Shown: one piece after another, positions 1 through 35,417 of the stretch
Layout: every line of letters starts with the position of its first letter
Numbering within the stretch: position 1 is the first letter of the stretch
DNA from: Thalia democratica
Lineage: Eukaryota
Length of the DNA stretch: 64,000 nucleotides
Reading direction: 5' to 3'
Assembly (NCBI GenBank): GCA_965202585.1
Contig: OZ241831.1
Coordinates: 60,884,001-60,948,000, forward strand
Made by a program: the position numbers and the translations under genes
The notes under the pieces: generated by a model
Told to the model about the DNA's origin: nothing
Databases searched by the model: none
Seen by the model: the letters and a program-made list of their open reading frames with translations, nothing else

Positions 1-1556
1 GAATTTTTAAAATCGCCATTTGAATAAATTATATATATATATATATATATACATTTTTAATATTTTTTATATTGCTTTCTATTGAACACAAATATTGCCG
101 ATGAAAGCATGTAGTGCGCTGAAACACCTGTACAAGAAAACAAAAACATGTAAATTAGTGATAAAAAAAACAACGGATTAAAACAATCAACTTAATTAAG
201 ATTGACTTTTATACTATACAAATATCATAGTTGTAAGCATGATTACGTAGTTTATAAATATAAAAACCAAGTTTTTAGTTTAGTTGTTTGTTTTAATTCG
301 TTGTTTTTTTTTAACAGATATTACACAACATACTAAAATAAATAACAAGGTATTTCTACATTAGATTTACTAAGATAATCTTAATACTATGTGTTATTAC
401 CAAGTAGCTTAAGATTGCTTGATCATAAAAATTATTTTATAATTTTTTGCTAAGTAATCAATAAAGTTAAAAGTTCATGATTCAGAATTACTTCTTATAA
501 CGAATTTAAATAATTTACTGTAAAAAAGTGTTATTATTAGTATACTATATTGATAGTTTTAAAAGTATTGAATAACTAAAAGTTTCTTTAGGATAAACAA
601 TTAAGTATCATTTAATAATAAAAGTTTTAAGTATTAATTTAAAAATAATAAAGAAATAGTTATGAATGTTTCACAAAGTTCAGATTAAAAGCCACTTTAT
701 TTATTAAGTCAAGTTTACATTAATAAAAACAAATGTTAAGTATATAGCATAATTTTTTTTATGACTATTACCAATTTGTTCAAATATTTCTAAATTTAAG
801 TTTTAAATCATAGATAATTATTTTTGCTATATTTTCACGGGTTTAGTTTTTATTTGAGTATTTACACCAAACAATGTTTCAGTTGAATTACCAATTGTTG
901 TTGAATTCAATAATTTACTAACTGTTTTTTATATTAAATAAAAGTTAATTAGAAACTGAACACATCAGCGGTTAAACAAATTTAAGAAAAATAATCTTCA
1001 AAAAAAGTATACGGATCATATTATAAACAACTAATGCAATAAATATATAATTCTGTTTCCAAGCTTAGAACTTTCTAATCAATTCAGCAATCCAATATTT
1101 TTAAATTTTAGTTTTTTTGTCTTGAGTTAAAAGTTTCTAAAGTCAATGTCGATTTTAGTAACAGAAGGGCGTATTAGGTTAAATGGATCTTAATTTAAGT
1201 AATTTTAAGCTTTTTTTATTTTCAAGTACAGATTTTATTAGTAGTCTATTTTCTATCCTGAGTTATGTTAAGAAATATACAAATGTTAACTTTATAATTC
1301 AGGCATATTGTTCAAAGTGTTTGCGTTACCTCGCGTTACACAAAACCAAAGTTTTTTCTTAATATGTTTTATGACCTAATTTAAATAGTACAAACGTTTT
1401 TATCTTTACTTTTATTAATTACAATCAAAAGTTTCGTCAACAGTTGATGTTAAGTTACTAATCCTTGACGAATCTTTTTTCACGTCAGTCAATGCATTAT
1501 TACGTCCTAGCATCGTCACAAAGGCTTTATAAATCAATATAGCTCATTTCAGACGT

Positions 1557-1629
1557 GCCCGGCTAGCTCAGTCGGTAGAGCGTTGGACTCTTAATCCAAC
1601 GGTCGTGGGTTCGAGCCCCACGTTGGGCG
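1557..1629 (+). tRNA. tRNA-Lys: tRNA-Lys(CTT)
   Basis: GCCCGGCTAGCTCAGTCGGTAGAGC...TTGGA CTCTTAA TCCAA...GGTTCGAGCCCCACGTTGGGCG; full cloverleaf, anticodon CTT, T-run downstream. Confidence 0.96.
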
Positions 1630-2332
1630 CACTTTTTTTATTTTAAGTACAACAAGAGCTAGTTAATTTTAATTATTTAAAGAAAAGTTATTTTCTAAAG
1701 AAAAATTATAACAATCTTACTTCCTACACATAATTAGTCAAAAGTTTTACACTTGTATTCGTTTTTTTTAACTATGTTTTAGTTATTAAGTGTTTTACAT
1801 GATAAAGTTTGTGAAGGTTTTCATACTAACTTTGATTTTTAATTTATTGTTGTACTTACTAAACAAACTATTAAATTACAGTCATTATAAATAAGGAAAT
1901 ACATTGATCAATCAAGTTTTGTTATTAGTATGTTGCATTATATTTATTTACTAAAATATTCTTCAGGTATTTTTTTTTGAAAATTAAGCTATCCACCTGC
2001 TTCTAAAATTTTTAGATAATCGATATTAAATAATGTTTATGCGTCCTAGTTGATAAGGATAGTTAAATCTGTACAATTATTTAAACTTTTATTTGTTGTT
2101 ACTTTGCAGGTCCTAATGTAGTTTAACATTACAATATATTTGATAAAAACTGTTTTCAAAGTTGAATATTTGACACATAGATAGTCACTTAAAGTTTAAA
2201 CAGGGTCTCTATGGAGCTATGGAATAAATAATTATCTATAAATAATTATTAATTAAGTTATAAGAGTGGATGTCTAAAATTTGGCCAAATGAAATTACCT
2301 CATTTATTGTTGATGGTCAACTTCAATAAATA

Positions 2333-2405
2333 TGTTTCCGCCCGGGCTCGAACCGGGGACCTTTCGCGTGTTAGGCGAACGTGATAACCGCTACACTACG
2401 GAAAC
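2333..2405 (-). tRNA. tRNA-Val: tRNA-Val(AAC)
   Basis: Reverse complement GTTTCCGTAGTGTAGCGGTTATCACGTTCGCCTAACACGCGAAAGGTCCCCGGTTCGAGCCCGGGCGGAAACA; anticodon AAC. Confidence 0.96.
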
Positions 2406-3229
2406 TTGTGATAGGGTGCAGTATATTGTGTTTATATACTAATTAAGTGAGTAAGTTTGCGCTTAAAGCTTTTATGTGAAGCTTTCATAGCATCTATCAG
2501 AGATGTTAAATCGCAGAGCACAAAATCCCCGCAGTAGAATAAAAAATAAAAAGCATGGCAATAGAATTAAAATTTCTTATGAAAGCAAAAGCTGTATTTT
2601 ACAAGTTGAGAACATAAAAGTTTCATATATTCAATTACACCAACATATTTAAAAGCATATAGTTTTTATAAGTATGAATGCCTTAAATGTAAGTTTATGT
2701 TTTTTATTTTCATAAGGTTAATTTTATTCACTTTATTGTTAATTTAATCATAACTACCTTTTAACCTTGTAGTAGTAGGTAATGTTTGGTTAGAAAAGTT
2801 AAAGAAAAGTATCTTCCACTTATTTAAATGGTTAATAAACTAAAAACATTGTAGCTTTGGAACTAATCGATGTTAAATTAATTTATTATTTGATTTTTTT
2901 TTCCAAAAATTAGATGCAATAGACAAATTATTTTTTCTTATATCCTACTTTTATCAAATTATTTGAATTTTTAAACTTAAAAATAAAGTTTGATTATTAT
3001 AATTTTTTAAGATTCATTATAAATTATTTTATTAAGACATAGATTTCACTTAAAAGTAATTTGAATATAATTTATTATTTTTGTTTACAAACTTGAAACT
3101 ACTATTTGCTTAGATTAAATCTATTTAAAATTTTTAATGTGACAAATTTATTGAGTCTTTTTTTATTATAATTAGGTAGTTTATCTAAAAAAAAATATTA
3201 TACTTGAAAGTTTTAGTGTACAACTCAAG

Positions 3230-3560
3230 GTTTTTAAAACTAGTTTTGTAAATTAAGCAGAGTTGAAACAAGGTCAGGAAAAGTCAAAAAACTCAGGAAA
3301 AGCAGAAAAAAAAGATAAATAACAAGAATAGTAAGGTTTTTTTTATTAAACAGTCAGGAAGTTTGACTAAATATTAAAAAATACCAGATTTTGTCAGTTT
3401 AAATTCACTGAATTCCTTATATTCAAAAACAAGTCTTTGAATGGTAAAAAATTAATTTAAATTCTTCAAAGTGTGATTAAAATTGAAAAAACTTCCAAGA
3501 ATTTTACAAAATTACTTAATGCCTTCATCTGGTAAAATTAAATGAATATCCTTTATAAAA
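3230..3560 (+). mobile_element. Decayed MITE fragment (AGTCAGGAAA-repeat family, related to 4888-5298)
   Basis: Repeated AGTCAGGAAAA motifs; colinear similarity of 3380-3530 to 5025-5170; no intact ends. Confidence 0.5.
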
Positions 3561-4372
3561 CTGCAAAATGTTTCTATTAAAATTTTTTTAAACTATCCTA
3601 CTAGAACAAACAGTTTTTGTAAGCAGTTTGATAATCTGTAGCATTTTTTAGTAAAACAATGATAATACACATAAGTTTGTTTATCTAGCATATGTTAGAA
3701 TTGAATCGTTTTTCGTTTAAGTAAATAAATAATTTCATTCTAATTAAACACTAGGTTTAGTGTTTTGGGTAATAAGTTTATGTTTATAATTTACCTCATT
3801 ATAATTTTTTCAAAATTGTTTAAATTTTTAAAATAAATTATAAAAGAGGTGAACTTCATGGTTAAGTTTAATTATTTATAGTTTATTGTAGAATAGTTGT
3901 TTTTTAATATTTTTTACATAAATAAGGGTAAAATATTTACTACTAATTTTATAAATATTGATAAACTGAAATATAAAATTGAAGGCTTTATTAATTCCAA
4001 GTGTTTGAATATGTATTATATTATTTGTTTAAATTGATAATTTGATTTAGAAAAGTCAGGAAAATTGTAATAAAAAGTCAGGAAATTGTTTAAAGAGTGG
4101 ATAATAACTATAAAAATTCTGTACTTTGACAATTAAGGCAATTAAAACCTTAGCAAAGCTGAAATTAGATATAATTTAAAAAAAAACTACATTTTTTAAC
4201 AATAAACCTAAAAAACCTGAAATTCTTAACAAGTTTACAAAGTTGGGTAATAAAATTTAACTTGATTCAAAAATATTTCATATAAATAAGTTTTTTTTTT
4301 ATCAACAAAAAAAAATTTTTTTCATAAAACGCATTTCAATAAACTTAAGTGTTTTTCAATGGCTTATGCTAT

Positions 4373-33807: not shown

Positions 33808-33992
33808 ATATATATATATATAAACACTTCAAAACACTGAGTTTTTTTAATGCTTAACTTTTATTCTGCAGATATGCAAAAAAAACACAATTTACCATGA
33901 TAGATGCTAAGTAAGCTTCACATAAAAGCAGTTATGCACAAACTAACTCACTTAATCAGTTTATAAACACAAAATACTGCCTCCTATCACAA

Positions 33993-34065
33993 GTTTCCGT
34001 AGTGTAGCGGTTATCACGTTCGCCTAACACGCGAAAGGTCCCCGGTTCGAGCCCGGGCGGAAACA
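33993..34065 (+). tRNA. tRNA-Val: tRNA-Val(AAC)
   Basis: Identical to the other Val copies. Confidence 0.96.
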
Positions 34066-34752
34066 TTTTTATTGAAGTTAACCATCAATAATAGAATGAG
34101 GTTATTCAATTTGGCCAAATTTTAGGCAGTCACTCTTATAACTTTATAGATGATTATTTATTCCATAACTCTATAGAGACCCTGTTTAAAACTTTAAGTG
34201 ACAATCTATGTGTCTAAAACGTTAATATACAACTTTTAAAATAGTCTTTACCAAACGTATTGTAATGTTAAACTACATTAGGACCTGCAAAGTAACAATA
34301 AATAAAAGTTTAAATAATTGAACAGAACTAACTATCCTTATCAACTACGACACATAAACATTATTTTATATCGATTATCTAAAATTGTTTAAAAGCAAAT
34401 AAGCAGGTAGATAGCTTAATTTCTAAATAAAAAGTACCTAAAGAAATTTTTACTAAATATAATACAATATTTTAATAACAAAACTTAATTCAGCAATGTA
34501 TTTCCTTATTTATAATTTCTGTAAGTTCAAATGGTTTTCTTTTAGTAAGTACAACAATAAATTAAAAATCAAAGTTATTATGAAAACCTTCACAAACTTT
34601 ATCATGTAAAACACTTAATAACTAAAACATAATTAGAAAAAACCGAATACAAGTGTAAAAATTTTGATTGTTATAACTTTTATTTAAGAAAAAAACTTTT
34701 TATTAAATAACTAAAATTAACTAGCTCTTGTTGTACTTAAAATAAAAAGATG

Positions 34753-34825
34753 CGCCCAACGTGGGGCTCGAACCCACGACCGTTGGATTAAGAGTCCAAC
34801 GCTCTACCGACTGAGCTAGCCGGGC
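34753..34825 (-). tRNA. tRNA-Lys: tRNA-Lys(CTT)
   Basis: Identical to the 1557 copy. Confidence 0.96.
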
Positions 34826-35375
34826 ACGTCTGAAAAGAGCTATATTGATTTATAAAGCCTTTGTGACGATGCTATGACGTAATAATGCATTGACTGACGT
34901 CAAAAAAGATTCGTCAAGGATTAGTAAATTAACATTAACTGTTGACGAAACTTTTGATTGTAATTAATAAAAGTAAAGATAAAAACGTCTGTACTATTAA
35001 AATTAGGTCATAAAACATATTAAGAAAAATCTTGGTTTTGTGTAACACGAGGTAACGCAAGCACTTTCAACAATATGCCTGAATTATAAAGTTAACATTT
35101 GTATATTTCTTAACATAGTTCCGGATAGAAAATAGACTACTAATAAAAGTTTGACTTGAAACTAAAAAAAAAAGTTTAAAGTTACTTAAATTAAGATGGA
35201 TTTAACCCAATACGCCCTTCTGTTACAAAAATCGACACGACTTTAAATACTTTAATTTTTTTTGTCAAAACAATTTACATGTTGTTGTTTTCTTGTACAG
35301 CTGTTTCAGCGCACTACATGCTTTCATCAGCAATATTTGTGTTCAATAGAAAGCAATATAATAAAATATTAAAAA

Positions 35376-35417
<42 letters not shown>

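Follow-up and report, generated by a model that had tools for sequence, protein, structure and literature searches.

Stepwise arm divergence in a nested tRNA gene palindrome of Thalia democratica

A palindrome of about 35 kb was observed in a 64-kb stretch of the Thalia democratica genome (C7:60884001-60948000, contig OZ241831.1; hereafter the window), where transfer RNA (tRNA) genes lie in mirror order at several nested scales and the two arms become more alike toward the axis in abrupt steps. The inner 9.3-kb zone of the arms is ~1.5% divergent, and a core of 1.7 kb per arm only ~0.1%. This pattern suggests that old inverted duplications built the nesting and that the young layers are due to episodic, non-reciprocal copying between the arms, anchored at the axis; we give this reading a probability of about one half. 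The window is part of an 802-Mb genome, has a base composition of 75% A+T and carries 27 tRNA genes. The analysis also took in 140 kb to the left of the window, where negative coordinates continue the window numbering. The resulting 204 kb contain 87 tRNA genes, and 52 of the 86 adjacent pairs are antiparallel.

The left arm is interrupted by a hAT transposon (Table 1). When the transposon is removed together with one copy of its target-site duplication (TSD), 30-2497 plus 15164-24516 form a colinear mirror of 24531-35413 in the reverse-complement alignment, with an intact empty site in the mirror arm. The initial annotation, made from the letters of the window, had predicted that this excision extends the symmetry to ~35 kb and that 30-2489 mirrors 33908-35400, and both predictions held. 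The outer arms match by BLAST at 95.4% (30-156 versus 35401-35272) and 87.9% (1130-2499 versus 35253-33898), which amounts to about 88-92% identity between the left outer arm (XL) and the right outer arm (XR). XR lacks ~975 bp (156-1130) that are retained in XL and in two paralogues further upstream, S1 and S2. The inner arms match at 96.9% (15156-17635 versus 33907-31466) and 98.5% (17710-31324, self-inverted); taken as long inverted-repeat arms, 15164-24516 and 24531-33907 flank a unique spacer in which GAATTTCAC nearly repeats the arm end GAATTTTCAC. The nesting of inverted pairs reaches no fewer than four levels (Gly/Gly, Val/spacer/Val, inner, outer, outermost). In the innermost palindrome, pairing amounts to 92% in the Lys flanks and 80% in the Gly flanks. 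Secondary axes, expected at about 15530 and 33530, were found at 15534 and 33530. The arms of the latter (32703-33473 / 33586-34358) match at 90.3% by BLAST, and the pairing around the former (15156-15476 / 15589-15912) stops at 15912 because the hAT breaks the left arm. The 112-nt spacer at these axes had been taken for a miniature inverted-repeat transposable element, an assignment that stays tentative: it has four local copies, 88-100% alike, and elsewhere ~18 weak, partial, dispersed matches (72-83% over 70-100 nt).

Table 1. Coordinates of the palindrome and associated features (window numbering)
Feature	Position	Strand	Content
Left outer arm (XL)	30-2497	+	tRNA-Lys-CTT 1557-1630 (+), tRNA-Val-AAC 2333-2405 (-)
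hAT transposon	2498-15155	+	12.66 kb
Left middle layer	15164-22852	+	Val-module remainder, 112-nt spacer, Val+, Asp-, Lys+, Gly-, Gly+, Lys-
Left core arm	22853-24516	+	Begins at tRNA-Ser-AGA 22931-23013 (-)
Axis spacer	24517-24530	.	14 nt, asymmetric
Right core arm	24531-26194	-	Ends at tRNA-Ser-AGA 26032-26114 (+)
Right middle layer	26195-33907	-	Lys+, Gly-, Gly+, Lys-, Asp+, Val-, spacer, beginning of Val+ module
Right outer arm (XR)	33908-35413	-	Val+ 33993-34065, Lys- 34752-34825
Outermost right arm, module S7	36467-50670	-	Val, Lys, Pro, Arg-TCG, Arg-TCT, Ile, Asp, Arg-ACG
Secondary palindrome, axis ~15534	15156-16361	.	Arm 15156-15476, spacer 15477-15588, arm 15589-16361; 90.5% (BLAST)
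Secondary palindrome, axis ~33530	32703-34358	.	Arm 32703-33473, spacer 33474-33585, arm 33586-34358
Innermost palindrome Lys+ Gly- / Gly+ Lys-	19686-22147	.	Axis ~20940; mirror copy 26905-29344
High-copy dispersed repeat, ~525 bp	23825-24349; mirror 24698-25222	.	Arm copies 100% identical
(TA)n tracts	30-51; 35380-35413; 15241-15253; 33808-33822	.	Last two mutual mirrors

Divergence between the arms was scanned for change points by likelihood, counting substitutions only and ignoring indels. The outer/inner border separates 7.9% from 1.22% substitutions, with the change point at 15205, opposite 33865 on the right arm (support 15174-15234), and twice the log-likelihood difference (2dlnL) at 173; the middle/core border separates 1.48% from 0.12%, with the change point at 22852, opposite 26195 (support 22852-23001, 2dlnL 31). 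The initial annotation had described the outer arms as more diverged than the inner ones and the divergence as layered rather than uniform; self-alignment with the hAT removed agrees on both counts and resolves the layers into these discrete steps. Identity is 99.9% in the core and 98.5% in the middle layer; in the outer arms it is ~88% with gaps included. Near-identity in sex-chromosome palindromes is set at arms over 99% alike, a level that only the core exceeds here. Indels plus 116 substitutions distinguish the arms. Going inward from the hAT site, the first border follows after 10-70 bp, beside a (TA)7 tract (the tract at 15241-15253 sits just inside it), and the first 42 bp inside that site (15164-15205) retain outer-type divergence. 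The second border overlaps tRNA-Ser (22931-23013); tRNA genes were considered as layer borders in general, which is true for the core and fails in other palindromes. All layers are colinear and in register, and their borders contain no extra DNA.

The same two levels of divergence recur in two other palindromes of the region. The palindrome of paralogue S1 (-126548 to -114101, C7:60757453-60769900; 12.5 kb, 95.7%, axis -120324) has its step at about -125123, close to where its own small Gly/Gly palindrome turns; divergence there drops from 6.7% to 1.4%. In S1 a mirror pair of Lys-Val type lies inside Lys-Gly-Gly-Lys-Ser arms, a nesting order opposite to that of the window. The second palindrome, centered at -38568 (-51121 to -26015), is tail-to-tail; its arms measure 11 kb, and a Gly-Lys-Ser fragment lies in the 3-kb spacer between them. 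Here divergence falls from 7.6% to 1.1% at -48389 (support 90 bp), and inside this step the similarity is patchy, an 800-bp stretch holding anything from 1 to 20 differences. Since the same two levels are present in three palindromes, a shared homogenizing process is more parsimonious than three simultaneous independent duplications. Furthermore, the two arms of one locus resemble each other more than arms of different loci do: in a four-arm test on the Lys-Gly-Gly-Lys block, 166 informative sites group the arms by locus (window, S1), versus 1 and 0 for the alternative groupings, a pattern of concerted evolution. The step in divergence does thus not simply equal the age of a duplication, as the initial annotation had read it.

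Relationships among paralogues point the same way for the outer arms. In a tree of five Lys-Val modules, XL groups with both arms of a palindrome centered at -65577 and XR groups with S1 (~-109500), each with 100% support, and sites in the outer-arm quartet are split 30 vs 4 vs 2. The closest relatives of XL lie 68 kb upstream and that of XR 144 kb upstream. XL matches the upstream copies S2 and S3 at 95.5-96%; against S2 the identity is 98% over 30-1079 and ~95% further in, and a 96-97% match extends left to -12535. The right side of the window (26885-35247) aligns colinearly with S1, and identity stays uniform at 91.6-91.8% on either side of the layer border. As judged from these alignments, the left side of the window is a chimera whose outer part is S2/S3-like and continues, in register, as S1-like sequence further in, and the right side is of one lineage. 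Because the outer arms derive from different paralogue lineages, their high divergence is not simply the age of a duplication made here. The uniform distance of the right arm from S1 across the border further suggests that the younger layer replaced sequence and added none. The initial annotation had also named a finding that would speak against its model, namely that the outer matches are copies of a repeat family; they do belong to a local multi-copy family, yet they are colinear.

The following history would account for these observations. The 35 kb represent the center of a head-to-head junction between oppositely oriented modules of several tRNA genes. Old inverted segmental duplications produced the nested mirrors, whose arms are now ~7-12% apart. 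One arm would later have been copied onto the other, by gene conversion in the broad sense, in tracts starting at or reaching the axis, and this copying would have left the 9.3-kb zone at 1.5% and the 1.7-kb core at 0.1%. Separately, XL may have exchanged with the paralogues 68 kb upstream or may descend from them. Intrachromatid repair or template switching between synapsed arms is a possible route. Layers kept in register without added DNA, recurring divergence values, patchiness and anchoring at the axis together favor such episodic copying from arm to arm. Consistently, the old dispersed repeat in the core is 86% identical to its family yet 100% between the arms, and the palindrome at -65577 has the outer arms and the spacer without the inner block. 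Patchiness is evident at -38568; in the window it is limited to the core and one 4.7% patch (17979-18421). The mirror tRNA-Asp-GTC genes (18084-18155 and 30883-30954) lie within this patch; each departs by one base from the most frequent Asp sequence of the cluster, and the two departures are not at the same site.

Several observations weigh against this history. Apart from that patch, the differences in the middle layer are close to evenly distributed (chi-square P = 0.057), and derived alleles, polarized by paralogue S1, are found 49 times on the left and 44 times on the right, with no significant runs (P = 0.24). The even spread and the 49:44 split fit one long copying event followed by undisturbed mutation better than a continual supply of short conversion tracts. 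A tract of 9.3 kb is long for ordinary gene conversion. No indel, insertion or heterology is present at the -48389 border, which is sharp without a visible stop, and a palindrome at about -87000 has no young zone. The outer limits of the S1 palindrome differ from those of the window, and independent formation of the two would also yield the 166:1 grouping.

A possible, if on the whole unlikely, alternative is that the layers are successive true inverted duplications, younger nested in older, with divergence equal to age. In the strongest version, the right arm would have been copied leftward after a fold-back, or a switch of template, at the 14-nt spacer; the new strand would have been rejoined by homology in the pre-existing Val module, so that the outer junction came out in register. 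The asymmetric spacer with its microhomology (GAATTTCAC / GAATTTTCAC) is as found in fold-back junctions, and this explanation would also account for discrete, internally homogeneous layers, an even split of derived alleles, a chimeric left arm in which two paralogue lineages meet at the border, and differing limits of the S1 palindrome. A precedent exists in yeast, where one junction is quasi-palindromic without homology and the second lies in diverged inverted repeats (PMC4317496). The near-Poisson spread of differences and the even split of derived alleles keep successive duplication alive in this fold-back form. Three independent events of near-equal age (1.5%, 1.4%, 1.1%) would nevertheless be needed, the patchiness at -38568 would be left unexplained, and the core has the size of an ordinary conversion tract. 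In addition, the arrangement R' - Val module - outer arm predates the split between S1 and the window (~8% ago); nothing new has come to the center recently. Copying and duplication differ mainly in whether the left inner arm preceded the last event. Repeated inverted duplication, the mechanism put forward in the initial annotation, stands as the building principle of the locus, with its nested levels and alternating modules; rounds that add DNA at one place are not supported, since the young layers are in register with no new DNA and the outer arms are not sisters.

A bolder extension of the copying history is that the tRNA superclusters of this animal grow and are renewed by a dedicated, recurrent process in which replication or repair turns back at or near axes and tRNA genes and recopies one arm onto the other. 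We regard this as improbable. If true, such clusters would be fractal stacks of palindromes, their tRNA genes would stay identical without tandem arrays, and the levels of 1.1-1.5% and 7-8% would mark genome-wide episodes.

It is quite improbable that the hAT set the border of the homogenized zone, either as 12.7 kb of heterology that blocked copying or through aberrant transposition. The identity of the element as a member of the hAT superfamily is based on its TSD, its ends and a domain match. The 8-bp TSD, GCATCTAT, is present at 2490-2497 and 15156-15163, and the mirror arm has a single GCATCTAT. The terminal inverted repeats are CAGAGATG and CAGACATGG, the right end reading CCATGTCTG as written, and they conform to the YARNG-type consensus of hAT ends. 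An exon-like piece (12187-12408) matches PF05699, the hAT C-terminal dimerization domain, with 24.6 bits (cut-off 21.4). The long open reading frames of the element gave no Pfam matches, and copies of this family were not among the best 150 hits of a genome-wide PF05699 search. At least 40 full-length genomic copies were found, 98-99% identical. The copy in the window has 11 private substitutions in 2400 bp (0.46%), compared with ~2.1-2.6% private change in the outer flank beside it, so the outer arms had already diverged at insertion; the hAT was considered as the source of outer-arm divergence and rejected on its age. Aberrant transposition, also considered, was rejected on account of the perfect TSD, the normal empty mirror site and the lack of a second element end at the mirror border (33907). 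Borders equivalent to this one are also present in the two other palindromes without any insertion. What speaks for a role of the hAT is its position, as the change point (15174-15234) lies 10-70 bp from the insertion, which has a chance of about 1-2% if the element landed uniformly in an 11.9-kb arm. The private change in the element (0.46%) and the divergence per arm of the middle layer (~0.74%) are also of the same order, and the element could predate the last copying. By its sequence, the hAT is a recent insertion of the usual kind, situated 10-70 bp beyond the homogenized zone; it could at most have halted the last copying event.

An assembly artefact, be it a chimera formed by a fold-back or a head-to-head joining of two haplotypes, is scarcely credible: the core is almost identical between the arms and 1.1-1.5% falls within the range of heterozygosity in marine invertebrates, but among contigs built from reads over 23150-25900, which show presence only, one from an independent data file (run X17) crosses the spacer (24487-24560) with 0 differences at a depth of 34, against 63-79 on the flanking arms, the ratio to be expected if a single spacer separates two arms, and, besides the indels and substitutions between the arms, the structure recurs three times in unbroken sequence without N and the outer layers are far too diverged for alleles.

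The case is a new example of known processes. Ongoing gene conversion keeps the arms of primate sex-chromosome palindromes alike, and rearrangements concentrate at their centers (PMC8327919). The window resembles palindromes of primate and mouse sex chromosomes (PMC8327919, PMC8600007, bioRxiv 10.1101/800185) in having arms of at least ~10 kb and a short spacer, multi-copy genes in the arms, small palindromes inside larger ones, instability and change at the center, and, as compared with one paralogous palindrome, arms closer to each other within the locus than to related copies. It differs in that its cargo consists of RNA polymerase III genes (tRNAs) rather than testis genes, that its arms diverge by 1.2-1.5% rather than by less than 0.2%, that it shows concentric layers with sharp borders, and that several palindromes are arrayed as alternating modules; moreover, it lies on a 67.7-Mb assembly contig of a marine invertebrate.

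Yeast inverted arrays, produced by origin-dependent inverted-repeat amplification (ODIRA) or found on the macrotene chromosome IV (PMC4317496, citing Brewer et al. 2011), are likewise composed of units in alternating orientation. They combine a quasi-palindromic junction (here the 14-nt spacer) with a junction in diverged inverted repeats (here Val/spacer/Val, 15534 and 33530), and inverted repeats are present at both kinds of junction here (axis and Val/spacer/Val). In contrast, the yeast arrays arose recently in the laboratory as amplifications under selection, and their copies are identical, whereas the present copies are old (7-12%) and only in part re-homogenized. ODIRA is also defined by an inverted triplication, and the window is a two-copy palindrome: two copies of high identity meet at the axis, and beyond 15534 and 33530 lies the older Val/Lys module. 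Fold-back inverted duplications (PMC3907307, PMC10622511) are likewise mirror duplications that turn around a short asymmetric spacer with microhomology; their usual outcome is a terminal deletion or a dicentric chromosome, whereas here both flanks are kept, in register with the older mirror. In a survey of eukaryotic tRNA clusters, adjacent pairs were mostly parallel, often nearly all of them, and clusters were mostly tandem (PMC2888827). As in those clusters, several isoacceptor families occur within a few kb and gene bodies are identical where flanks diverge; unlike them, the present cluster has a majority of antiparallel neighbors and mirror order at several nested scales.

Multi-copy tRNA genes must remain identical, and how animal clusters are built and kept uniform is poorly described; our literature searches found no description of palindromic tRNA superclusters. 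A cluster of this size made of nested mirrors and re-homogenized from the axis outward would be a natural, autosome-scale counterpart to sex-chromosome palindromes and yeast inverted arrays. For annotation, it would follow that stepwise divergence in a palindrome should not be read as duplication age before paralogues have been checked.

The supercluster extends over at least 190 kb and is composed of alternately oriented modules. Mirror gene order and colinear inverted matches (82-92%) continue to about -35018 on the left and 50670 on the right. The left extension reads Pro, Lys, Arg-TCG, a 13-kb repeat array, Arg-TCT, Ile, Asp and Arg-ACG, and module S7 on the right mirrors about -35018 to -1649. 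Altogether, five modules (Val, Lys, Pro, Arg-TCG ... Arg-TCT, Ile, Asp, Arg-ACG) follow one another in the orientation + - + - +. Their tail-to-tail junctions are at about -87000 and at -38568, their head-to-head junctions at -65577 and at the window axis (24523). The palindrome at -65577 corresponds to the outer palindrome alone (Lys, Val / same spacer / Val, Lys) and lacks the 18-kb inner block. A further Lys-Val / Val-Lys mirror pair, known from match coordinates alone, is centered near C7:61903566. Gene bodies are identical in 17 of 18 Lys-CTT and 9 of 11 Val-AAC copies, though their flanks differ by ~10%, as would be expected of functional genes under purifying selection.

The (TA)n tracts at 30-51 and 35380-35413 had been taken for the outer boundaries of the palindrome. 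The tracts are present, but S1 and S2 run through these positions and the symmetry continues; as true outer ends they were rejected, given a mirror order that reaches about -35 kb and +51 kb. All 13 tracts of (TA)>=6 in the window fall within 30-35413, and with about 6 per arm their association with borders is anecdotal. At the tract on the left, ~690 bp (-658 to 36) are missing from paralogue S2. Both arms also contain a small element of 140-200 bp that is self-complementary, with 80-86% pairing (17710-17881 and 31153-31359), adjoining (TA)n tracts and the largest indel between the arms. The ~525-bp dispersed repeat has >4800 candidate copies genome-wide at 85-87% and a very high word depth in the read data.

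Three Lys-CTT copies, at -122273, -109451 and -66902, carry an anticodon change (CTC once, CCT twice) and one substitution each. They occupy Lys-CTT positions of paralogous modules and are either decaying copies or anticodon-shifted tRNAs. Ile-AAT and Asp-GTC, 7 nt apart (49028-49181), are kept as a pair in all five modules (further copies at -92849, -81763, -44097 and -33208), possibly as a dimeric transcription unit. To the right of the mirrored region, a direct duplication (51028-53456 / 58275-60775) with a period of ~7.3 kb and 80-90% identity carries tRNA-Arg-ACG (51190, 58435); tandem arrangements like it are few in a cluster otherwise built of mirrors.

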